DNA from: Selaginella moellendorffii
Taxonomy: Eukaryota > Plantae > Lycopodiophyta
Direction of reading: 5' to 3'
DNA length: 64,000 nt
Assembly (NCBI RefSeq): GCF_000143415.4
Contig: NW_003314271.1
Span: 620,001 to 684,000 of the forward strand
Shown: positions 294-55,447 of the stretch, piece after piece
Numbering within the stretch: the first letter of the stretch is position 1
How the letters are laid out: every line of letters starts with the position of its first letter
The notes under the pieces: generated by a model
What the model saw: the letters and a program-made list of their open reading frames with translations, nothing else
What the model was told of the DNA's origin: nothing
Database searches by the model: none
Position numbers and translations under genes: made by a program

Positions 294-3200
294 TTAGTTT
301 TTCTCTGGACAAGCAGCACGCAAATCTTCCTGGACCACTTTGATACTCGGCCTCTCCGAGCGCTCCAAAATGCAACTTAGCGCCAGAGCCAAAACATCGT
401 CGATCCCCTGCGGTGGCTCTTGATCCCTGTCATAGCCAACCAGTGCCTGATCGTAGCACTCCGGACCCCTGCCTTCCGAGACGAGCAGCTTCACCCAGTC
501 CGTGAGGTCCACAGCTCCAGAGTTTCCAGAGATGATGTCTCCGGCACCTTTGCCCGTGACAATCTCCATCAGGATCACACCGAAGGCGTATATGTCCGCT
601 TTGAGAGTTGGCTTTGGCTTCCTGGCGTGTGCAAGCTCGGGAGCGCGGTATCCCAGCGCTCCCGCGTTGAGAATCTGGTTGGCTGTTCCAGCGGGTGTCA
701 TGAGCCGGTGAATGCTGTAGTCAGACAGCCGCGCTACGAGAGAAGATCCATCCAGTAGGACGTTGCTAGCTTTCAAGTTGCCGTGAGGGAGCTTGTGCTT
801 GGTGTGCAGATACGAAAGTCCGCGCGTAATATCGACTGCAATGCGCACTCGCTGTGACCATTCTAGTGGTGGAAATCTTCGACCACTTCTTTCTGCGTAG
901 AAGAAATGGATAGGTAAGGAAATGCGTAGAAAGGGAAAGGCGGAACTTTTACCAGTAAGTCGATCAGATAAACTTCCAAAGCTGAGGTAGTCCGATATGA
1001 CGAGCTTCTCGTGTTCTCTCGGCCCCCAGTAATAGCCTCGGAGAGGAAGTATGTTTGGATGTTGAATGGAACCAAACTTTCTAGCTTCACGAGTGAATGC
1101 TGCTTTGTTCTTGGCAAGTCCTTCTCGCAGCCACTTGACTGCCAGCATGTGTCCATTTTCGAGCGTTGCCTTGTACGAAGTACCATGGCTACTGCGACCG
1201 AGAACTTCAGCAGGCGCGCTCGACAGCTCTTCCGGCGTGAAGACAATCGAACTGTCAAGTAGAAAGAGATCTCCAGCCAGCTTATCGGGAGAACGGGCCT
1301 TCTGACTGGGAGCACGTTCGAGTGATGACGGACCTTCGTCGAGCAGCGTTGTTCGACTCTTGCTTCGCTTTCTTGTGAGCAAGCCTTCCTGTTTCTTCTT
1401 GGTGTCCCGTCCGTCACCTTGCTCCGGAGAGCCAGGGACGTTTCCTTGTTGAGGTAGAAGCTGCTCCCTCGATAAGCTCACTGAAGCACCAGCTTTAGCC
1501 GCAGATGGAGGCCCGAACTCCAACCGGTGAGGACTTTTTACCACGTCACGTTCATCCGAAGAATTTTTGTCAGCTGCTTGCAATCTGGAGTAGACGAACA
1601 GAGCGATCGCAATGATGATGACTGTTGCTGCTACACACCCCCCAATCAAGCCGGCCTTCACTGCGGATGATAATCCTTTGCCCCGCCTGGACCGCAAGGA
1701 CGGGATTCCAGCCCCGCTGCTTCCAGGTACTACAAGTCCGGCATTGCCCGGGAAAAAAGACGACAGTGGAAATCTTGATAGCAAGTTTGCTGGTATATGT
1801 CCCGACAAGTCGTTGTTTGTCAGGTTCAATGTCTGTAATGAAGATGGAAGCTGTGCTGGAATCCGGCCACGAAGATGGTTAGATGAAAGATCCAAATTCT
1901 CCAAGTACCTCAACCGTGAGAGCTGACTGGGAATGCCTCCAGTGAAGTCGTTTCCTCCCAGGTTAAGGACGACTAGTCCCGAAAGAGAAGCAATTTCTTG
2001 GGGGATGGAACCATTGAGACTGTTGAAAGATAAGTCAAGGACTTGTAACGGGGAGAACAAAACCGCTGGGGGAGTGGAAGAGATGGAGGTGGGCGACAAG
2101 AGCTCACCGGGGATGGCGGAAGAGGAAAGGAAGCTCACGACTGGAATCCCACCCACGAGATTATTGTTTGCGACTCTGAAAATGGTTAGAGACGGGGAAT
2201 GAAAAAAATCACCAGGGATTTCACCATCGAGATTGTTGGAGCTGAGGTCTAACGCGGTCAGTTTGCGGAGGGATGCGAGAGTACCGGGAATAGGACCAGA
2301 CAAGGCGTTGTGAGATACGTTGAGGTACATTAGTCGGAGGAGGTGTGCTGTTTCGTTGGAGAGAACGCCGTCAAAAGAGTTGCCGCTGAGGTCGAGAACC
2401 TGTAAGCTGTCCCTCCAGTCTTTGATCACGTCCAAGTTCCCGGAAAAATTATTGTTGCTGAAGTCTACTATGGCGCAGCTTCCCAGTCTTATCGGCAAAG
2501 TACCCGAGAGGTTATTCGACGCTAGCCTTAAGATCGATAGACTGGTGGCTGCCACCATTCCAATAGTACCTGCAAGAAAGAGAAGAGTGAGAAATATAAA
2601 CGACAGAAGAGAAGCAAACAACGTAAACACTTACCGGAAAGATTGTTGAAGCTGATGTCAAGCTCCTCCAGCACAGATTCCGTGGCGAGAAGCGCCGGAG
2701 GTACATATCCCACGAAGGAATTGTTCTGGAGTCTCAAGACACGTAGCGAGAAGACAAACGAAAACGACGGAAGCTTCCCCGACAACAAGTTGCTGCTCAC
2801 GTCCAGGATTTGCAGCTCGCTCGCAAACAAGCTCGCCGCGTTCTCGGGAGCCAGCTCGCCAGTAAACCTGTTGGAGCTGAGATTTACCGAGCTGATGCCT
2901 TGCGGGAAAACAAATGGAGCACCCTGCTGCCACGGGAGCAACCCCGAGAGCTCGTTGCAGCTCATGTCGATCACTTCCATGCGGCTGAGACCCATGAGCA
3001 CGGGATCCACCTCTCCGGAGAGCCTGTTCTGGCGAAGATCCAGCCGGTGCAAGCTTTCCAAGCTGCTCATCTCTCTCGGGATCACACCGCTAAACGCGTT
3101 CCACGAGAGGTTGAGCGAGACAAGCTGCCGCAACGAAGTGATCGATGGAGGGATGCCACCCGAGAGCGAATTGCCGCTTAAGTCGAGATCTCCGAGCCGG

Positions 3201-3706
3201 ACCATGCTCGCAAACATATCCGGGACCGGCCCCTCGAGCTTGTTTGACGAGAGAGAAAAGTTTACCACGCTGCGCAGGCCGGCAAAGGAGCTCGGGATGG
3301 ATCCCACGAACTGGTTGGCCGACAGATCCAAAAACTGGAGAGCATGGAGCTCGCCCAGATCCTCTGGAAGCTTTCCACCCAGAGAATTGTTGCCGAGAAG
3401 CAGCGACGTGAGCCTGGACAGCCTGCCGATCGTTCCAGGAGAGATTTCTCCCTGGAGCTGGAGATCGCCCAGTGCCAAACCAGTGACGCTGCCATTGGAG
3501 CACACTACCCCGTGCCACTGCGAGGGGCAGCCCGACGGATCCACCCTGTTGGCAACCCAGCTGCTCCTGATCAGCCCCCCTGGATCGCCAGTGACCCCAT
3601 CCCGAAATTTCAGCAGCGCCGAGGCATCGTCCGCCAAGGAATCCGCCCGCCAGGAGCTCGACAAGACGAGAATTCCCACGACGAGCGCCAGCATTATCCT
3701 TCCCAT
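294..3706 (-). CDS. LRR receptor-like kinase of the SIRK1/GHR1 (LRR-III-related) type, probably catalytically atypical; 3 exons
   Basis: Signal peptide MGRIMLALVV..., LRRNT (CPSQWHGVVC), many LxxLDLSxNxLSG repeats, and a TM helix (GLIGGCVAATVIIIAIALFVY). Kinase begins SPDKLAGDLFLLD...TPEELSSAPAEVLGRSSHGTSYKATL and has HGNLK instead of HRD and DYS instead of DFG. Short introns at about 2633-2568 and 951-893. Confidence 0.93.
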
Positions 3707-7240: not shown

Positions 7241-8895
<1,655 letters not shown>

Positions 8896-14439: not shown

Positions 14440-15250
14440 TTGATGAGTGATTTCTTACTTGCTTGTCATCAGACGAAAGGAACGACTTCTTCCAAACGAA
14501 AACTGTTGATTGATGAATGAAAGATCATCTAGCAAGAACACCATCTTAAACAAGAATTTCCACGGCAGACTCGCACTTACCAGAAAGCTTAGAAGAATTG
14601 CAAATCATATTTTCCACGAGTTCTTCACTGGCACATTGATCGAAAAATGGTCGGATCAACGATGACCACTATCTTCTTCTTTGAAGATCATCATCTCCAG
14701 GAAGGCTGCAATCACTTCCACTGTAGAATAATCTTCAAATGCGTAGCATGAAGATCCACAAGGAAACATTGGGGATCTGCATGTCCATAGGTGTTGTTCT
14801 TTTTTCTTTTTACACAAGTGTGAAACAGGAATCAGTGCGTTCTTCACAAGATGGTCGTCCTTGATTCCCTAGCAGCCATTTTAGATCAATGCCCCCATGA
14901 ACAACTCATGGAAGATATGACTTGCAATTCCTTTTAAGTGTTTTGGTAAGTGGGACTTAGTGGAGTTCTTTGTTAAAATGTCTTCTTGCTGGATGATCTT
15001 CCAGGAACTCATTTATCAATCGACATAGCGGCCATTTTAGATCAATGGCCCCACGAAGAACTCGTGGAAGATATGACTTGCAATTCCTTTTAAGTGTTCT
15101 GGTAAGTGGGACTTAGTGGAGTTTTTTGTTAAAATGTCTTCTTGCTGGATGATCTTCCAGGAACTCATTCATCAATCGACAATGCCAAAACCTTTGTTAT
15201 CAATTTCGCCTAAAAGTCATTCCTCTCGAGCAAGTAAGCTAACATCATGT
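14440..15250. repeat. Diverged inverted repeat plus a ~155-bp tandem duplication in the divergent SEC12-like/Egt1 intergenic region
   Basis: 14872-15024 and 15030-15181 are near-identical direct copies (gccattttagatcaatg...atcaatcgaca). 14505-14651 is a diverged reverse complement of the same unit. Confidence 0.8.
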
Positions 15251-15598
15251 TTTTTGCTTCTTCTTTTAAAAAAGCGTCCTTCTCCGGGATGAAACAGCAA
15301 TCAGTGCGTTCTTCTGTCCATGGTTACGAACAAGAGACAAGTAAGCAATCAATCTCTAGAAGGTTCTATATTCCTTGCTCAGGAATTTCCTTTTCAAAAT
15401 CATAGGTAGCGTTCAACTTCCGAAAAACTGAAAGGCCGGTGTCATGTACATAACAGAGCCCTCCACGATTCCATGGCCATGCATGACTGGCCAGCAACCA
15501 CTTGTTCCAAATTAGAAGCTGCCACGGCACCACCGGGGCTACGATTGGGGATTTTAAGCTTCGCAGTTTGAAAGTTTTCGCGGAGTTTGGATCGCTTC

Positions 15599-17988
15599 AT
15601 GGCCAACGTGAGCAGTATCGTAGATGGTTTGCGGCGGAGCGAACGCAAACAAATTCCCTTCCATCTGCTCTACGATCACAGGGGCTCGGAGCTCTACAAG
15701 AAGATCACGGAGCTGAAGAGCTACTACCCTTTCGAGGCTGAGAAGGCTTTGTTCCAGAAGCATGCACTCGACATTGCTGGACAGATTGCCCCCGGCAGCT
15801 TGATTGTCGAATTGGGATGTGGTGTTGCTGACAAGACCGCTCTTCTCCTCAATGCGATCCTCTCCAAGCATCAGAGGTCTGAGGTTTCTTTGTGTTCTTT
15901 GTAACGTTCCTATCTTTTTCTTCTTGCTGTTCTTGATCGTCCTTGGCTTTTGTGCTTGCTTCTCCAGGTGCCATTACGTTGGTATCGATGTCTCCCGGAC
16001 TGCGCTGGACGAGGCCGAGTCTTCAATGGAAAAGAGCGATGATCTCGAGCTGGAGCTTGTTCATGCCGATTACTTGGAAGGGCTGGAGATGGTTCGAGAG
16101 AAGTATCCAGACAGACTCATTTGCATCCTCTGGCTTGGAAGTAGCATCGGGAACCTCTCGCAATCCGAAAGCGGTGACTTCGTTGGTCGAATGCTCAAGA
16201 TAGTTGGGTCCCGGTGCCAGTTTTTTCTCTGCGTCGGTGAGTATCTCTCTCTCTTCTCTAATTTGATCACGGTACGTTTTCTCCATTTGTCCAGACCTGT
16301 GGAAAGATGAGGCCACTCTGCGAGCAGCTTACGAGGATAAGCAAGGCGTTACTGGAAGTTTTATAAAAAATGGCATGAAGCACGGGCTGGAGCTTCTCGG
16401 GCATTCCGTATCTGATGACGAGGTTCACGAAGATTGGGAATACGAGGTACAGATCAATAGCATGTCCCGCCAAGTTGAGATGTACGTTCGTTTTCTCCGA
16501 TCACTCTGTCTAGTCGATCACGACATCGAAATAAGGTTCGCAACTCGACACTCGCTAAGTTGACATGTGTCGTCGTTCTCTTTTTCCATTTTTGTTTTCT
16601 TCCTTGGCAGTAAAAACGAGAGAGTCCTGGTCGAGATCTCGAGAAAGTTTACAGTAGAGGACGTATTGCAGCTCGTCAGTCAGCTCGGCTTTGTTTGCCA
16701 CGCCAGGTGGACGTCGAAAAGCTATGGCTGCTTTATGATGCTTTCTTGTGAGGAGGCCGCAATCAGGTGTTGGACGGACACAGACAAGCTGTTCAAAGGC
16801 GTCGGTGATTGGATGTCCCAACCGATCTCATATCGTCACCCATATTGTTTCTACTAGTAAGTGGCGAGTCGTGAGTGATTTTTGGTTGACAAATGCTTTT
16901 GGTGTTGCAGTGGCCACGTAACAGCTTTCACCATCATCAAGCTGCTCAAGGATGAGCCGGACACGGGTCTCAACCTTGTCTTCTCGCGCGGAATAGATCC
17001 CTGCATGTTGGACCCCAGCCGCTGTCACAAGCATCCGGAAACTCCAGCCCAGTGGCCGGACAAGGAGACGCTCAGGAAATATACCATGGATGGCCGAGCC
17101 CGAGTCCTGGAGTACCTGAGAGACGGCAACCCGGACGTGCGATGCCTCTGCCTCGTCCTCGAGCACGAGCGAATGCATCAGGAAACCATGGCCTACATGC
17201 TAGCCCAGGAACGCAAGCTCCAGTTCGAAGCTCCTCTTCTCATTCCTCCTCACGAGCTCGGGCTCGCGGACGGGAACGGGACTTCAAAGCCGGCAGCTAC
17301 CGACGTCTTCGTCTCCAGAGGCTCCGTCGTGCTGGGAAGCGATCCAATTCCCGGAGTCTTCCGCTTCGACAACGAGGAGCCGTCTTACAAGACTCAAGTG
17401 GAGCACGACTTCTGCATCAGTTCCATGCCAGTTTCGATCGGGGAGTTTATGGTCTTCGTCCAGGACGGGTGCTACAACAAGAGAGAACTCTGGCAGGAAG
17501 ACGATTTTACGTTCCTGGAGAGGAGTGGTCACAAGTTTCCTGCAACTTGGTCCTGCTCCCAGGGGGACTATTACGTACACTTTCCATACAAGACGCTCTC
17601 CTGGATCGAAGCTCGTCACCAGCCTGTTTACGTGAGCCTGATGGAGGCCGAGGCTTTTTCCAAGTGGATGTGTTCCAGAGTGATGACCGAGGCTGAGTAT
17701 CAGCGAGTTTTGGACGAGGAGTTTGCGAGGGAGGAGCAGAGGGTGAAGCATTTGAAGGATGGAGGATGGGAGTGGACGAGTTCGCTACTAGCACCGTTTG
17801 AAGGGTTCACGAGCATGGAAGAGTACCCGGAGTATTCGACGGACTTCTTTGACGGCTTGCACTACGTCCTCAAGGGGTCATCTCCAGCAACACATGTCTC
17901 ACTGCTGCGGGATTCCTTCCGAAATTTTTATCAGCGGCAGTACCCGTATGCTTTTGCCAAATTTCGGCTGTGCAAATCGTCACAGTGA
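15599..17988 (+). CDS. egt1: Egt1-type bifunctional ergothioneine biosynthesis enzyme: N-terminal EgtD-like histidine N-methyltransferase fused to a DinB + FGE-like sulfoxide synthase (EgtB-like); 5 exons, 703 aa
   Basis: Exons 15599-15876, 15968-16236, 16295-16535, 16611-16856 and 16911-17988 total 2112 nt, in frame, all GT-AG. MT motifs: LLYDHRGSELYKKITELKSYYP, VELGCGVADKTALLL, LWLGSSIGN, AYEDKQGVT, VEM, VEISRKF. Sulfoxide synthase motifs: RHPYCFYYGH, RGIDP...CHKHPE...WP, iron motif HERMHQE, FDNE, WEWTSS, YPEYSTDFFDG, FRNFYQRQYPYAF. Confidence 0.92.
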
Positions 17989-18839
17989 TTCCTCCTATAA
18001 AATTACTCCTATAAAATAAAGGAAGAAGTTTTCCTGTTTATATTTTATGTTTTATGCAAAAAACAGAAAAAAACAAAAATATTTTAGAATCACAAAACTT
18101 TAAAAACTTTTACAATATTATTTTAACTTTTACATTGAAAACCTTAGATATTATTATCTTAAACTATTTCATAAAATGGTATAGTTTATCTCAGATGCTA
18201 AATAAATAACAAAATGTTAAAAGAAATAATGAACTCTTTTTCACTTTTATATATAAACTAAGGTTTTATTTTTATATTCTACTTTCATATTTCATGCATT
18301 CAAAATGTTACTTATATAACTATGATACAGATTAAAACCAATCCAACTGCTATCAAAATCCCATTACACTAATATTAATATATAGCACCATAACTATACA
18401 ATGTAAAATAAAAAAATATAACTTTTAATATAATTTAATAGCAATATATTTGTGATATTTTTTGTCAGCCAAGCTACCGAACTATCCAATTCACTGCTTT
18501 GTCAACAGAATGAACAGGTCTTGGCAAGCAAGGTCACCACCATAAACGTAGCGTGTTTCGTGCCCCTTGCCATAACTCAAATCCGAATAGCACCTCAAGA
18601 GAAACTCCAAACTCCAATCTTCCAGCCAGAAGAGCTTCGGCACCCTGCAGTGTGAACTTGTTGGGGATTGGTACTAGTCCTGATGTAATCATCGTGGCTG
18701 AGCCTCTTCAAGTCTTCCCAGTCCCGGAGGAACTTCCACAAGCCTTTGTCACACTTTTAAACTTCGTTACCAACGAAAAAATGAGGACTCTATGAACAAA
18801 CCGCTATGAACAAAAACAAAAGACGCAACGGACCGCCAC

Positions 18840-21800
18840 TCAAACCCACCTCTTTGACAGCTTCCCAACGCCAGCGCCATTTTGGATCAGAATCCCCGAC
18901 TGTCGAATAGAGCTCGGCTTGGAACCTGCCAACTCCAAAGACACGAAAACGATTACCAATGCAGCTAAGTACAAACATGGAAAAGCTTACCTCGCTTCGC
19001 AAGTTCCTCCGAAGCCACCGCCGCCGCCGGAATATCCGACAATCTCCGTAATCCAGCCATTGACACTGACGCTGCGCTGGGGAGCTTCTTCTCACTTCGT
19101 GGAGGCCGAGGTATTTGAGACAATGAGCTACAAAAAAAAGAGAAAGCAGTGTTGCCAAAGATCAATACCAGCTACTGTAAGGCTCACCGTAGCTCGTTGG
19201 CATTGAGACCTGGCCTTGAGCTGTTTGTTGCTGCTCTCATGGTCTGAGATTGGTCGCTGGCCACCGAGAAAGAATCCTGGGACGCCTCTCCTTCAGACAA
19301 GTCCTCGTAGTTATTCTCCATAGCTGGCCAGTTCCCCGGTACGTTGTTCTCAAAAACTACGAAGGCGTCGCCGTCCACGGACCTGCGAGGCGTTTCCAGC
19401 AAAGTAACATCCGGTATATCTTCGGCAGCAGTTTCATCTTGACTCGGAGCACGACCAGCCTGTCAAAAGTAGATTAAGGATGGCAGTCACTCCCAGCTTC
19501 AATTACCTCCATACTGCGCAATTCGACAGATCTCCTACTCCGGGCATCAATGGAGCGAGTGGACTGAGACACTCTTAGTTTCTGTTTTTCCAACTCCATG
19601 CTGCTACGAAGGACCCTCGAAGCTTGCAAGCGCTCTATTTCTGCATCCTTTTTGGCCAGTATCTCTTTCAAGGACACTATCTGAAAATATCAACCGTGAA
19701 CCAAACTCTATCCATCTGGTTTGCCAAGAATGTACCTGCTCCTTGTATTCTCGAATTCCGCTCGCTTCTCTATTCGAACGTGCGGCACCAAGCTCAACAC
19801 TTGACACCCTCTCTGCAAACTTCAATGTACTTATTGTCTCCCCGTATGAATCATTGTCCGGGTTTATATGGACAAACATCAGAGCTTTTGCTTGACCACC
19901 TGTTCACGTCGGATATACATATAGATATCAGCAACCATGAGAACCTTACCCAGAGAATGCTGAAGGAGTTGTGTTAGCTTGCTATTTCGGTAAGGGATGT
20001 GCGTCTGCTTTTGAGCCAAAGCTGCAATAACATCCCCTAAAGCCGATAAAGACTTGTTGATATGTTGCGCCTCCTTCAATCTGTCTCCAGTCGCCTCCGA
20101 CTTCTCCACTCGCTCACTTCCCGCGAGATCAACTAAGTGGAGACAGCCACGGAGAATGCAGCCCTTTGCAAGATCCGTGCCTTGCACATGCACAGTCAGT
20201 ACACTGCATAGAAAGATCCACGGGAATTTCATTACAAAAACAAATAAAACCACTGACCTGTGAGATCGACTGCTGCGTTCATTAAGAGCTGTAGCTCCTA
20301 CAGCACGGTTCCTCTGTCCGACAGCCATGATTTCTAGCACATCTGAGCTATTTGCAACGGGGATCATAACAGCATCAGGTACGTGCACGCCATTAAGTGA
20401 CGAAGAGCTTCTTATGCCAAGTCTCTTGCTCACACCATCAGCAGCCAGGAGATCTCTCACTTGTTCATTGTAAATCTCAATCATTTGCACCCCAACTTCG
20501 TAGGCAAAAGCGTCCCTCCTGCTTTGACATAATTGAAAAAGATCGTTTAGTGCTCGGTAGTTAACCCCCCAATCTTGTTTTGCAGTTGAACTTGGCCCTG
20601 TCTGCATCAATAGACGTTAATACACAAATCTTAACGGAGCTCACACCTTACCATAGTATATGTTTTTCCAGAACCAGTCTGTCCATACGCAAAAATACAG
20701 ACGTTGAAACCATCAAGCACCGATCGAATCAAAGGCTGCGCATCCAGAAAAACCTCGTCTGCATGCACGTGTCATTGTGACTATTGGAGCAAAATATAGA
20801 ACGTACCTTGTGGAGCTTGAGGGCCATAGACCTTGTTAAAATTAAACATCTTATAAGAGTCTTTTCCCTTTGTCGAATTTGCGACCATGATTTCCCCGTT
20901 TTGACCAACAAAATCAACGCAAGTCCCTTGATCTTTCTGACCAACAAGAAAAGGTCTAACACGGCAGTAAACACGAATATTTCCTGCAGGTAAATGGTAT
21001 TAGAAGAGAACTAATGGAGCACTGTATACCCTTCAAGTCCTGTACTTCATTATACAGCTTGCGATTCTCTGCAAGAACGTCATGGTACGCTTGAGCGGCT
21101 TCTGTTAGTCCTGTTAACTCATTTTCTGAAAGGGAACTAATGTCAGAAACAAGAAAGATTTTAAAAACTCATTACCAAGTCTAATAAGCTGATCTTGCCA
21201 ACATTTCTGCATTTCGAGCGTTCCTGTTCTGATAAGTCCAGAGGTATGCTTCAGATTCTGAAAACAGACGTAATCGGAAGATACAATCACCAGCTATTAA
21301 TTTGACGTACCTGAAGTGCATTGGACTGAAAAGAGATTATTTGTTTGTACCGCTCTTCGCGATTCTTGAACTCATTTCGTTCAAGAGAAACACTGGCTTC
21401 AAAACTCCGCATCTGACTGAAAGAATCTTCAAGTTTCGCATCCATTTCCGAAAGCTTTCGCTTATATTCCTCCATTAACTTCTCATTTTCAATCTCCATT
21501 TCGTACTTCTTCCTCTGATCAGCTTTCATGACTTGAAGTTCATTTGTAAGAATCTCGATTGTGGTCTGCTTTTGATCTCTGTCCAGTACCAGCTTCTCGG
21601 TGTCACCTTCGTGTATCCGTTTCTCTTCCTCAAGTCTTTTGTTCTCCATCTGCGGAGCAAATCTGAGACGGTACGTAAAAGCTATACATAATTACCTTGG
21701 TTTGTTGCAATTGTTGAGTAACAAGCTGTCACAAGAAACAACTCAGTAGGCTTGCACAGCAGTAAGCATATACAAACCTTTATTTCCTCGCCTGAACCTG

Positions 21801-25564: not shown

Positions 25565-26570
25565 ATGCTAGCGACATCAGTGCTTCCGGCATCCGCAGAT
25601 CTTGCAGGATGCTCCATGCGAACAAGTCGGCATGGCAAGGGACGATTTGCGAGCAGCAGGAAGAAGAGATTGCGCGCTGCTTGATGCGCTGCCATGAGAG
25701 CTATCCAAGAATTTCGGGGTGATGGCTGGAGCGGTCCAAGGCTTCGAGCTACTCACTAGATTCAATATCCTAGACCAGGTAAAGAACAAGACGTCGTTCT
25801 CTTCTCGTCTTTCTTTCATCTATTTGTTTGTTTCCTCCTCCTCTGTTCTAATTGTCTCTTTCTTTCAGCACAGAAGCTTTCTCGCAAGCTCGTACTCTTC
25901 ATGCTTTCGTGGCCCCTCTTCATGTATTGTTGAAGAGATTTTCCTTCTTTCTCTACTCGCTCACTAAAACACATCAACGTTTTTTTGTTCTTCAGTCTCA
26001 ACCGAGTCTAAACCGATTTTCCATGTTTGTTTTGTCCCTAAACAGCTCTTCGTCGGCGTCCCGCTACATCGCTAGTTCTACTGGCCAACTTCTAATCCTC
26101 GGCCTTGGTTTTAGAACAAACGAAGGGGTGAGTGGAGATGGCGATGCCAAGTGATCATTCAAGCAACACCAGAAGTTTTTATATTCTTTTGCTCGTCGTT
26201 TCCTTGTGCTTCTTTTCTAGAGATCTTTTACGAGCTCCTTGGTACTGCTCTTCATAAGCACAGTGTGCTTCTGGCCTGAGTCCCCCATTGGAACGATATA
26301 GCTCTGTCTGTGATGTGTTTTGGTGACGGTAAGTAAATCCATTCCAAAAGCTTATGGTTTTTTCTTTTCTTTTCTCTCTGGAGCCTGATTCTCGCGCTGA
26401 CGTCATAGTCAGGCTTCCGAAAAACCGACAGCAATCTTCGTCTGTGGAACAAAAGACAAAAGCCTTTTTCTTTCGTAACACTTCTAGCGTTCCGGGTCGA
26501 TCTATTATGCTTTGGATCCGCTAGATACTCTAGCTCAGTATCTAGCTCGTATCACTCATCTCGCTAGCAA
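25565..26570 (+). pseudogene. Degraded phytol kinase (VTE5-like) copy
   Basis: Colinear with 27884-29153, including near-identical intron text (ctagaccaggtaaagaacaagacgtcg). Has deletions and frameshifts in most exons. Confidence 0.85.
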
Positions 26571-26787
26571 ACATGCATTTCATGATGACAAAAGCATGAT
26601 TGAGCAGATATAGCTCCAGAGAAACAAGCTTTTCCAAAGACAAATTCTCCATTTCACCTCTCCACTACTCTCGAACACATAGCTGGTCTTAGGATTCGAG
26701 GTACAATTCTTGATATTTGTCATGTCGACTTTCTTAATTGTTACTGTAAATATTCCCTCTAATTGACCCTTTGAGGATTATCCCATT

Positions 26788-27092
26788 TTCCCACTTGGTT
26801 CTAGCTGTAGGCGAGGAATCTGATCTTCATTTTCACAGGGTACCGGCGACGAAGTTCACGGCAAGCAGCAGTGGGAAAGAAAGTACCAGCCACTGTGGCT
26901 CAAAGGAGGGGGTAACTTGGAGCTCTATCCAGAGTATATCAAACACTTGCGCAAGTTTATCATGTCGCTTGAGAAAACCAGTGGAAGGAACCGAAAGTCG
27001 GAATCCGAAATCGAAGTATCCAAAAGAACTCTTCTCATACCTTGTCGATATCAAACCAGTATGTTCTCTCGACGGGATACATAACACGCAAG
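26788..27092 (-). pseudogene. ABHD17-like hydrolase fragment
   Basis: Deleted homolog of the intact exons at 51086-51545 (agccactgtggctc..., tcaaaccagtatgttctc...acataacacgcaag). Confidence 0.8.
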
Positions 27093-54013: not shown

Positions 54014-55447
54014 TTACATTCCAAGAACCAATGTCCCGGGATCACGTAGCACCAAACTATTCTCTAACTTTTCTTGATCCGGGCACGATCCATCCAGGGA
54101 AACCCACCAGGTCTTGACTTGGCGATCCAATCCACCACTCACAACCCGGGCTCCAGCCCCGATAGACGAGGAAGAACAAGCAGCCATAGACACCGATTTC
54201 ACCGGGCCTTGATGCCCCTTGATCACGCACAAGCACGAGTGGATCGCTGTGAATCTCTCCCTCGACCACACGCGGATCGTCCTATCGGCGGATCCACTGC
54301 AAAGAAAGAAATGCCCATCTTGGATGCCGCTGGAAATCGCCAGGCACAGCACCGCCATGCAATGCCCCCGCAGGGCATCCACCGCCGCCATATGCATCGC
54401 CGTCTCCTCGCGCTCCCACACCACGATTGATCGATCGCTCGACGCCGAGTAGAGGTAGCCCGACGAGGAATCTAGCGCCAGGGCGTTCACTGACGATTTG
54501 TGGCGCTCCAGGACCGCGACGAGCGACAATCCAATCTGTGCCTTGTTCTTCCCTCCCAAGAAAGAAGAACTCTGGGAATTAGAACAGAGCTCCCATGCTT
54601 TGATCTTGCCATCGGCGGCAGCGGTGTAGACAAATTGCTGCGCGGCGGCCACGGCATTGATCGCATCGTCGTGGGCCGCGCGCACGGAATTCAGGCACTT
54701 CCAGTCAGCGGCGCGCCAGATCTTGAGCGATCGGTCCCAGGAGGCCGAGAAGACGAGATCTTTGGTGGCGGCCAGGCACGAGACCGCGTCGGCGTGCTGG
54801 ATCCAGAGCTTCTTCCGGTGGCGGCGCACCTGGATGTAGCTCGAGGGGAGGATGGATCGCGAGAGGACGTCCTTGACTGTGGGAAGAGTGTGGCAGAGCT
54901 CGATTTCCTCGCTAATTATTCCCTGTTCTTGGCGATGGCGCTTCTTCTTTCGCCACACACGAATCTTGCCGTCCTGGTGGGCGGTCAAGACGCGATTTTG
55001 ATGCTCCAGAATGGCTTTGATGCTGCCCCCGCGTGAGCCCACGGCCTCGAATTCTTTAGAAGCGCAGGGATTTTGGTGGATTCCATGGCTCTCGGTGCCG
55101 ACGAGGAGGAGCTCTGGGCTCTCTGTGGCGCAGAGGGCGGTGATGCCGGATTTGGAGGCGATGGCGGTGGAGGGCAGCGACTTGTAGGGGAAGTTCTTGA
55201 AGACGCAGCTGGTGTAGAGACACAGGAGCGCCGAATCGACGCTGCTACCGCGTTGAAAGGACGAGACCGATGGGAGGCTCGAGGCAGAGGACTGATGCGA
55301 ATAAGAAGATCTGATGGAGAGTTTAAAATCGATGGAAGACGAGGAATTGGAACATCGGGAGAAGGAAGAAGTCGAAGAGCAAGAAGCTGTTGACGATTCT
55401 AGCGAACTTGCCTGATCAGCTGCGCTATTGCAAAGCCCGAGCTCCAT
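54014..55447 (-). CDS. Intronless WD40-repeat protein, JINGUBANG-like
   Basis: TAHQDGKIRVW, YIQVRRHRKKLWIQHADAVSCL, SASWDRSLKIW, AHDDAINAV, GHQGPVK. Ser-rich N-terminus. Confidence 0.88.
   Translation of the reverse strand: MELGLCNSAADQASSLESSTASCSSTSSFSRCSNSSSSIDFKLSIRSSYSHQSSASSLPSVSSFQRGSSVDSALLCLYTSCVFKNFPYKSLPSTAIASKSGITALCATESPELLLVGTESHGIHQNPCASKEFEAVGSRGGSIKAILEHQNRVLTAHQDGKIRVWRKKKRHRQEQGIISEEIELCHTLPTVKDVLSRSILPSSYIQVRRHRKKLWIQHADAVSCLAATKDLVFSASWDRSLKIWRAADWKCLNSVRAAHDDAINAVAAAQQFVYTAAADGKIKAWELCSNSQSSSFLGGKNKAQIGLSLVAVLERHKSSVNALALDSSSGYLYSASSDRSIVVWEREETAMHMAAVDALRGHCMAVLCLAISSGIQDGHFFLCSGSADRTIRVWSRERFTAIHSCLCVIKGHQGPVKSVSMAACSSSSIGAGARVVSGGLDRQVKTWWVSLDGSCPDQEKLENSLVLRDPGTLVLGM

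Follow-up and report, generated by a model that had tools for sequence, protein, structure and literature searches.

An expressed EGT1 gene of Selaginella moellendorffii, inherited within the green lineage and predicted to encode a bifunctional ergothioneine-pathway enzyme

Introduction

The genes for ergothioneine synthesis have classically been described from fungi and bacteria only. In fungal Egt1 (Schizosaccharomyces pombe SPBC1604.01, Neurospora crassa Egt-1), an EgtD-like methyltransferase is followed by a DinB and then an FGE-sulfatase domain in one protein of 800-950 amino acids. The bacterial counterparts EgtD (PDB 4PIM) and EgtB (4X8B, 6O6L, 8VIG), in contrast, are separate proteins, and mycobacterial EgtB uses gamma-glutamylcysteine and requires EgtA and EgtC. 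A homologous iron-dependent sulfoxide/selenoxide synthase domain, again DinB plus FGE-sulfatase, occurs in OvoA (8KHQ), whose unrelated methyltransferase sits at the C-terminus and which acts on C5 of free histidine, and in SenA (8K5I), which is stand-alone and uses a selenosugar. Here we analyse EGT1 of the lycophyte Selaginella moellendorffii, which lies in a stretch of 64,000 nucleotides (nt) of contig NW_003314271.1 (positions 620,001 to 684,000, assembly GCF_000143415.4; hereafter the window). Like fungal Egt1, its product runs from an EgtD-like methyltransferase through DinB to FGE-sulfatase, but it is only 703 amino acids long.

That non-flowering plants carry this gene and make ergothioneine is already known. 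Kock et al. (Plant Biol 28:1343, April 2026; PMC13358676) reported EGT1 in streptophyte algae, bryophytes, lycophytes, ferns and gymnosperms and its absence in angiosperms, and their Dataset S1 names Smoe_440291 of S. moellendorffii as EGT1, together with other plant genes such as Mp3g17070 and Pp3c20_13320. The same study gives Smoe_232064 and Smoe_413706 as EGT2 candidates of Selaginella. Using liquid chromatography-mass spectrometry, ergothioneine was found solely in sterile cultures of species with both EGT1 and EGT2, including Klebsormidium, Spirogyra and Physcomitrium; the assayed species did not include Selaginella (PMC13358676). The plant result is already cited in a review of November 2026 (PMC13765261). 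As the study gives no gene structure, RNA junctions, residue analysis or phylogeny for plant EGT1 (PMC13358676), the present work adds an RNA-confirmed structure, intact catalytic residues, allelic synteny, purifying selection, introns conserved back to zygnematophyte algae, and a tree that fits vertical descent in the green lineage.

The product of the window agrees with Smoe_440291 across all four splice junctions and at nine of nine visible allele-distinguishing sites within the first ~400 printed residues. It is the identical gene, with the same two-domain order and with introns shared with the Marchantia orthologue, and there is no gene-level difference. This settles a point on which the first-pass annotation of the window, made from its letters without database searches, could not decide, namely whether homologs in non-seed plants had been reported. 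The annotation had also considered an ancient gene lost in seed plants. We found EGT1 in the gymnosperms Cryptomeria, Taxus and Ginkgo, and because gymnosperms carry the gene, the loss has to be placed in angiosperms and not in seed plants as a whole.

Gene structure and expression

Enumeration of GT/AG pairs around the proposed junctions recovered the predicted gene at 15599-17988 on the forward strand, with five GT-AG exons and an open frame of 703 amino acids (Table 1). This model is one among several open GT/AG solutions and the sole one with canonical splice contexts. The EgtD-like domain begins in exon 1, which supplies Tyr25, Tyr42 and the ELGCG loop for binding of S-adenosylmethionine (SAM). 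The protein begins directly with the methyltransferase domain, without an N-terminal extension.

The gene is expressed and spliced. As RNA evidence, we placed assembled contigs from four runs, belonging to four different studies, on positions 15400-18200. Each of the four coding junctions, for which the first-pass annotation had suggested a check in RNA, is present in these contigs as a GT..AG skip (91, 58, 75 and 54 nt). Junctions 1 and 2 are bridged by long contigs with a shorter side of 122-255 letters, and junctions 3 and 4 by contigs with shorter sides of 20-28 letters. Spliced RNA was predominant in every run, and variant letters seen in some runs are those of the second haplotype. A contig also reaches 78 nt upstream of a further joint in the 5' untranslated region (UTR), of which the last 30 nt were matched to the genome.

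Intron 3 is retained in a minority of the RNA contigs (16506-16638), with a depth of 325 unspliced against 1041 spliced in run X3, and likewise in X5. Such contigs stem either from retention of the intron or from DNA or pre-mRNA present in the libraries concerned. The leader (15311-15598) contains several upstream ATGs, and the ATG at 15320 opens a 15-codon upstream open reading frame (ORF) across the UTR intron; this reading frame or the leader could contribute to translational control. Directly upstream of the gene, a unit of ~155 bp is tandemly duplicated at 14870-15177, and the duplication contains two near-identical minus-strand ORFs of 43 amino acids (14881-15012 and 15037-15168). On the other haplotype the unit occurs once (L005, 9431-9582), and this copy aligns to both of those in the window.

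Table 1 Features of EGT1 and of neighbouring genes in the window
Feature	Position	Strand	Evidence or remark
5'-UTR exon, 3' end	15311..15340	+	Contigs of RNA runs X1 and X3, matched by eye to genomic letters
5'-UTR intron, 65 nt, GT..AG	15341..15405	+	RNA contigs from 15406 continue with the letters of 15311-15340
Remaining 5' leader and coding exon 1	15406..15876	+	ATG at 15599; amino acids 1-92 plus 2 nt
Intron 1, 91 nt, phase 2	15877..15967	+	RNA contigs; position common to Marchantia, Ceratodon, Closterium
Coding exon 2, EgtD-like domain including LGSSIGNL with Asn155	15968..16236	+	Pfam match, structure alignment
Intron 2, 58 nt, phase 1	16237..16294	+	RNA contigs; position common to Marchantia, Ceratodon, Closterium
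Coding exon 3, EgtD-like domain including Tyr195, Thr202, Met245	16295..16535	+	Pfam match, structure alignment
Intron 3, 75 nt, phase 2	16536..16610	+	RNA contigs; in Marchantia and Closterium, not in Ceratodon
Coding exon 4, end of EgtD-like domain (Glu271, Ser273), linker, start of DinB-type helix bundle to FY/YGH (split by intron 4)	16611..16856	+	Pfam match, structure alignments
Intron 4, 54 nt, phase 2	16857..16910	+	RNA contigs; position common to Marchantia, Ceratodon, Closterium
Coding exon 5 and stop, rest of DinB and FGE-sulfatase fold; His347, His430, His434, Tyr650	16911..17988	+	Profile and structure matches
3' UTR	17989..18048	+	RNA contig ends at ~18048
LRR receptor kinase (LRRNT_2, LRR and kinase domains)	294-3706	-	Long ORF
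eEF1A/HBS1-type GTPase	7241-8122	-	Long ORF
Motor domain of CH-domain kinesin	19879-20610	-	Long ORF
WD40 protein	54014-55447	-	Long ORF

The N-terminal methyltransferase half

For profile scans with Pfam and NCBIfam, each exon was translated separately. Exons 1-4 match Methyltransf_33 (PF10017, IPR019257) colinearly, at profile positions 3-85, 90-176, 180-245 and 258-295 of 304 (E-values 5e-25 to 8e-5). Among NCBIfam models, the N-terminal half matches both EgtD and EasF; exon 1 scores 78.5 bits on EasF and 77.3 bits on EgtD, whereas exons 2-4 score higher on EgtD. The closest solved structure is EgtD of Mycobacterium smegmatis (4PIM), with an E-value of 2.5e-27 over residues 12-302.

In this alignment, Tyr25, Tyr42, Asn155, Tyr195, Thr202, Met245, Glu271 and Ser273 of the Selaginella protein fall on Tyr39, Tyr56, Asn166, Tyr206, Thr213, Met252, Glu282 and Ser284 of EgtD. 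Tyr39, Tyr56, Asn166, Met252, Glu282 and Ser284, which form the histidine-specific pocket of EgtD, are all identical in the plant protein; the numbering, that of the structural work on EgtD, agrees with the two-residue tag offset of chain 4pim_A. Replacement of the pair Met252 and Glu282 turns the specificity of EgtD to tryptophan. The pair corresponds to Met245 and Glu271, within the VEM (243-245) and VEISRKF (270-276) motifs, as the first-pass annotation had proposed for the histidine-binding positions.

The C-terminal iron-enzyme half

Exon 5 matches the Pfam family FGE-sulfatase (PF03781) with an E-value of 9e-20. Its NCBIfam scores are 191 bits for SenA (NF041186; cut-off 420), 167 for EgtB (cut-off 360) and 122 for OvoA (TIGR04344; cut-off 400). 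The closest structures to the C-terminal half are EgtB, EgtB-IV and OvoA (E-values 1e-25 to 1e-27), and it also aligns to structures of OvsA and SenA; when the DinB part is included, EgtB-IV and OvoA are the best PDB matches. The DinB region with its FYYGH motif aligns to the same two structures, and orthologues carry DinB_2 (PF12867); in Selaginella the domain is divided between exons 4 and 5.

Aligned to EgtB of M. thermoresistibile (4x8b), His430, His434 and Tyr650 correspond to His134, His138 and Tyr377, and His347 lies within an FYxGH motif common to EgtB-IV (8vig) and OvoA (8khq). The roles and numbers of these reference residues are those of the structural work on EgtB. The motifs are located at 343-347 (FYYGH), 371-375 (RGIDP), 430-436 (HERMHQE) and 650-659 (YPEYSTDFFD), and FYxGH, RGIDP, HxxxH and the C-terminal tyrosine motif are common to fungal Egt1. 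Folds and key residues of bacterial EgtD and EgtB thus find their match in the two halves of the protein, while the nearest bacterial EgtB is 33-38% identical to its C-terminal domain. With Methyltransf_33 in exons 1-4, FGE-sulfatase in exon 5 and all quoted EgtD and EgtB motifs in place, the predicted EgtD-EgtB fusion in a land plant is borne out.

Identification as OvoA was rejected, given the reversed domain order and a score of 122 bits against a cut-off of 400; so was identification as SenA, given the fusion to an EgtD-like domain and 191 bits against 420.

Proposed function

What best explains Smoe_440291 as a whole is a bifunctional ergothioneine-pathway enzyme that is native to the plant and vertically inherited, and we consider this reading highly probable. 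The N-terminal EgtD-type, SAM-dependent methyltransferase would trimethylate histidine at its alpha-amino group, forming hercynine. The EgtB-type C-terminal half, a non-haem iron enzyme with three histidine ligands and a catalytic tyrosine, would then join a thiol, with O2, at C2 of the imidazole, yielding hercynylcysteine sulfoxide. The thiol donor would most likely be cysteine, as in fungal Egt1, and the two-enzyme, cysteine-dependent route with EGT2 is presumably the same in both. Ergothioneine would be completed by EGT2, a separate pyridoxal phosphate-dependent C-S lyase whose gene lies at another place in the genome; none of the peptides of the EGT2 candidate Smoe_232064 is encoded in the 64-kb window.

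Several points weigh against a role in ergothioneine synthesis. The C-terminal domain scores below the curated cut-off of every NCBIfam model that it matches (SenA, EgtB and OvoA), overall identity to fungal Egt1 is just 25-29%, and the Selaginella branch in our tree is long (0.76 changes per site). Sequence alone does not fix the thiol donor or the regiochemistry. Selaginella was outside the ergothioneine measurements of Kock et al., who also detected none in Thuja callus although both genes are present, and for plant EGT1 as a whole the literature offers neither an enzyme assay nor a knockout (PMC13358676).

Native status and descent

The second allele of the gene is SELMODRAFT_441187 (P0175) on scaffold GL377579.1, which is collinear with the window across 22 kb at 97-98% DNA identity. 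The gene order on this scaffold, as in the window, is eEF1A-like GTPase, CCCH/RRM gene, WD40 gene, EGT1, CH-domain kinesin and RNA polymerase subunit. Both haplotypes keep the full open frame, and the two proteins differ at 20 of 703 residues. The alleles show 19.5 synonymous differences over 455 sites (dS 0.044) and 20.5 non-synonymous differences over 1653 sites (dN 0.0125). Because the resulting ratio of non-synonymous to synonymous divergence (dN/dS) is 0.28, this indicates that EGT1 is under purifying selection.

Plant genes had been predicted on both sides of EGT1, and on both haplotypes the gene does lie between genes of plant type, namely a WD40 protein, a CH-domain kinesin and a receptor kinase with LRRNT_2 and LRR domains. 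The gene content of the window is ordinary for a plant, and the introns of EGT1 (54-91 nt) and its GC content agree with the flanks.

Selaginella shows only one EGT1 locus, present as two alleles, and several other plants have two copies, including Ceratopteris (P0218/P0219), Ceratodon (P0001/P0152) and Cryptomeria (P0171/P0172). The Ceratopteris copies, KP509_17G012400 and 17G012500, adjoin as a tandem pair. Elsewhere in the window, a segment of ~1.1 kb (25697-26859) is missing from GL377579.1. Within it, 26042-26353 shows 79% similarity to a nearby stretch of that scaffold (L005, 21493-21843), which suggests a repeat or small transposon.

Exon structures of orthologues were mapped by exact protein-to-genome matching, and an intron was counted as shared when it fell in the same alignment column with the same phase. 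All four Selaginella introns are shared with Marchantia polymorpha and all four with the zygnematophyte Closterium, and three of the four with the moss Ceratodon. None of the four positions is shared with Hyaloraphidium, the sole fungus checked. EGT1 of the trebouxiophyte Symbiochloris has at least 10 exons by tblastn, with many introns elsewhere than in Selaginella; its boundaries near plant introns 1 and 2 are off by ~3 residues and were not counted as shared.

Phylogenies of both domains had been suggested; the one of the C-terminal domain was built, as a maximum-likelihood tree of 88 sequences and 423 columns under LG+C20 with posterior mean site frequencies (PMSF), and it places the gene in the green lineage. 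Selaginella EGT1 groups with that of the lycophyte Diphasiastrum (support 98/94), within streptophytes (99/97) and within the green lineage (99/90), a placement near the species tree. A set of protist-like fusions, one of them from MMETSP, is sister to the green clade (98/96). Fungal Egt1 forms its own clade (100/100), which also contains two sequences from eukprot, one a Trinity transcript and the other EG_transcript_2714, interpreted as Euglena.

Together, these data show that Selaginella EGT1 is native and was inherited vertically within the green lineage. The line of descent is at least as old as the ancestor that Zygnematophyceae share with land plants, and probably as old as that of Viridiplantae. 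Of the two origins that the first-pass annotation had offered, the ancient vertical gene is thus favoured by shared introns and tree, and the recent horizontal transfer falls away.

Metagenome proteins annotated as 'dimethylhistidine N-methyltransferase', which are 40-48% identical, were considered as evidence of a bacterial donor for the fusion and rejected, since E2F, Tom37, sacsin and DPE2-type genes lie on the same contigs; these fusion proteins belong to picoeukaryotic green algae. In two metagenome contigs from ENA and JGI (L001 6001-8532 and the contig of P0194), an intron-free EGT1 lies between E2F and CBM20-GH77 (DPE2-type) genes in the same order. Both probably stem from picoeukaryotic green algae, so EGT1 would extend to such chlorophytes. 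Stand-alone 'FGE' proteins of 350-400 amino acids were found at 43-48% identity. We read them as terminal exons of EGT1 genes from eukaryotes to which prokaryotic gene prediction was applied, comparable to the window's own 368-amino-acid ORF.

Alternative explanations

Given that ergothioneine genes were classically known from fungi and bacteria and that the domain order is that of fungal Egt1, we considered whether the locus might be contamination from a fungus or bacterium, a chimeric assembly, or a gene that reached Selaginella recently by horizontal transfer. However, the gene recurs together with its plant neighbours on GL377579.1, over 22 kb of collinear sequence at 97-98% identity, which also speaks against the chimeric assembly with a fungal contaminant raised by the first-pass annotation. 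The intron positions and phases are in four of four cases those of Marchantia and Closterium and in none those of Hyaloraphidium; the short introns and GC content are like those of the flanks, and the protein groups with Diphasiastrum in the streptophytes, far from the fungal clade and from bacterial EgtB. Contamination, chimerism and recent transfer are excluded because haplotype synteny, shared intron positions and phylogeny contradict them, and we assign such an origin a practically negligible probability.

An enzyme with the architecture of Egt1 might still perform other chemistry, either by converting another aromatic amino acid to its betaine (the EasF type, giving tryptophan or tyrosine betaine) or by forming a selenium or C5 adduct as SenA, OvsA or OvoA-like enzymes do, so that its product would not be ergothioneine. 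The slightly better score of exon 1 on EasF, the higher score of exon 5 on SenA than on EgtB (all under their cut-offs), the top matches to EgtB-IV and OvoA once the DinB part is included, and the long Selaginella branch would fit this. Yet exons 2-4 favour EgtD over EasF, and Met245 and Glu271 keep the specificity pair of EgtD. In OvoA the domains come in the opposite order and the methyltransferase is of another kind, and SenA and OvsA are stand-alone enzymes that require selenosugar genes. Moreover, ergothioneine has been found in plants with orthologues of the gene (PMC13358676). We therefore regard a different product as improbable. Slightly less probable still is a decaying relic, transcribed but encoding an enzyme that is no longer active. 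It would account for the 20 amino acid differences between haplotypes, the long branch, the partial retention of intron 3 and the upstream ATGs in the leader, but the frame is open on both haplotypes with a dN/dS of 0.28, every catalytic or binding residue checked is preserved, and spliced RNA predominates in all runs. A native, bifunctional enzyme of the ergothioneine pathway remains the better account of the locus.

Deep origin of the fusion

Beyond the green lineage, EGT1 of green plants and algae, fungal Egt1, similar two-domain proteins of marine protists and the relatives in a red alga and in Euglena may go back to one ancient eukaryotic EgtD-EgtB fusion that predates the split of the supergroups. 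We put this forward tentatively, as a possibility somewhat short of an even chance. In the tree, the green, protist-like and fungal sequences, a red alga and some other proteins stand together, apart from the named bacterial EgtBs, with moderate support (91/79); this set also holds 450-amino-acid proteins of uncertain origin, and the tree covers the C-terminal domain alone.

A different arrangement was seen in a protist protein of 1208 amino acids (P0213, eukprot gene19627), which combines Methyltransf_33, FGE-sulfatase and an aminotransferase class I/II domain (PF00155) in a single chain. In the tree, its iron domain sits on a long branch and joins OvoA-like sequences (96/91). The protein may be a three-step thio-histidine fusion.

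Significance

If the fusion is as old as proposed, the ability to make ergothioneine would be ancestral to eukaryotes and not a speciality of fungi and bacteria, with many later losses, among them those in angiosperms, animals, Chlamydomonas and Saccharomycotina. Endogenous ergothioneine in plants overturns a long-held textbook statement and bears on stress biology and on dietary sources of this antioxidant.

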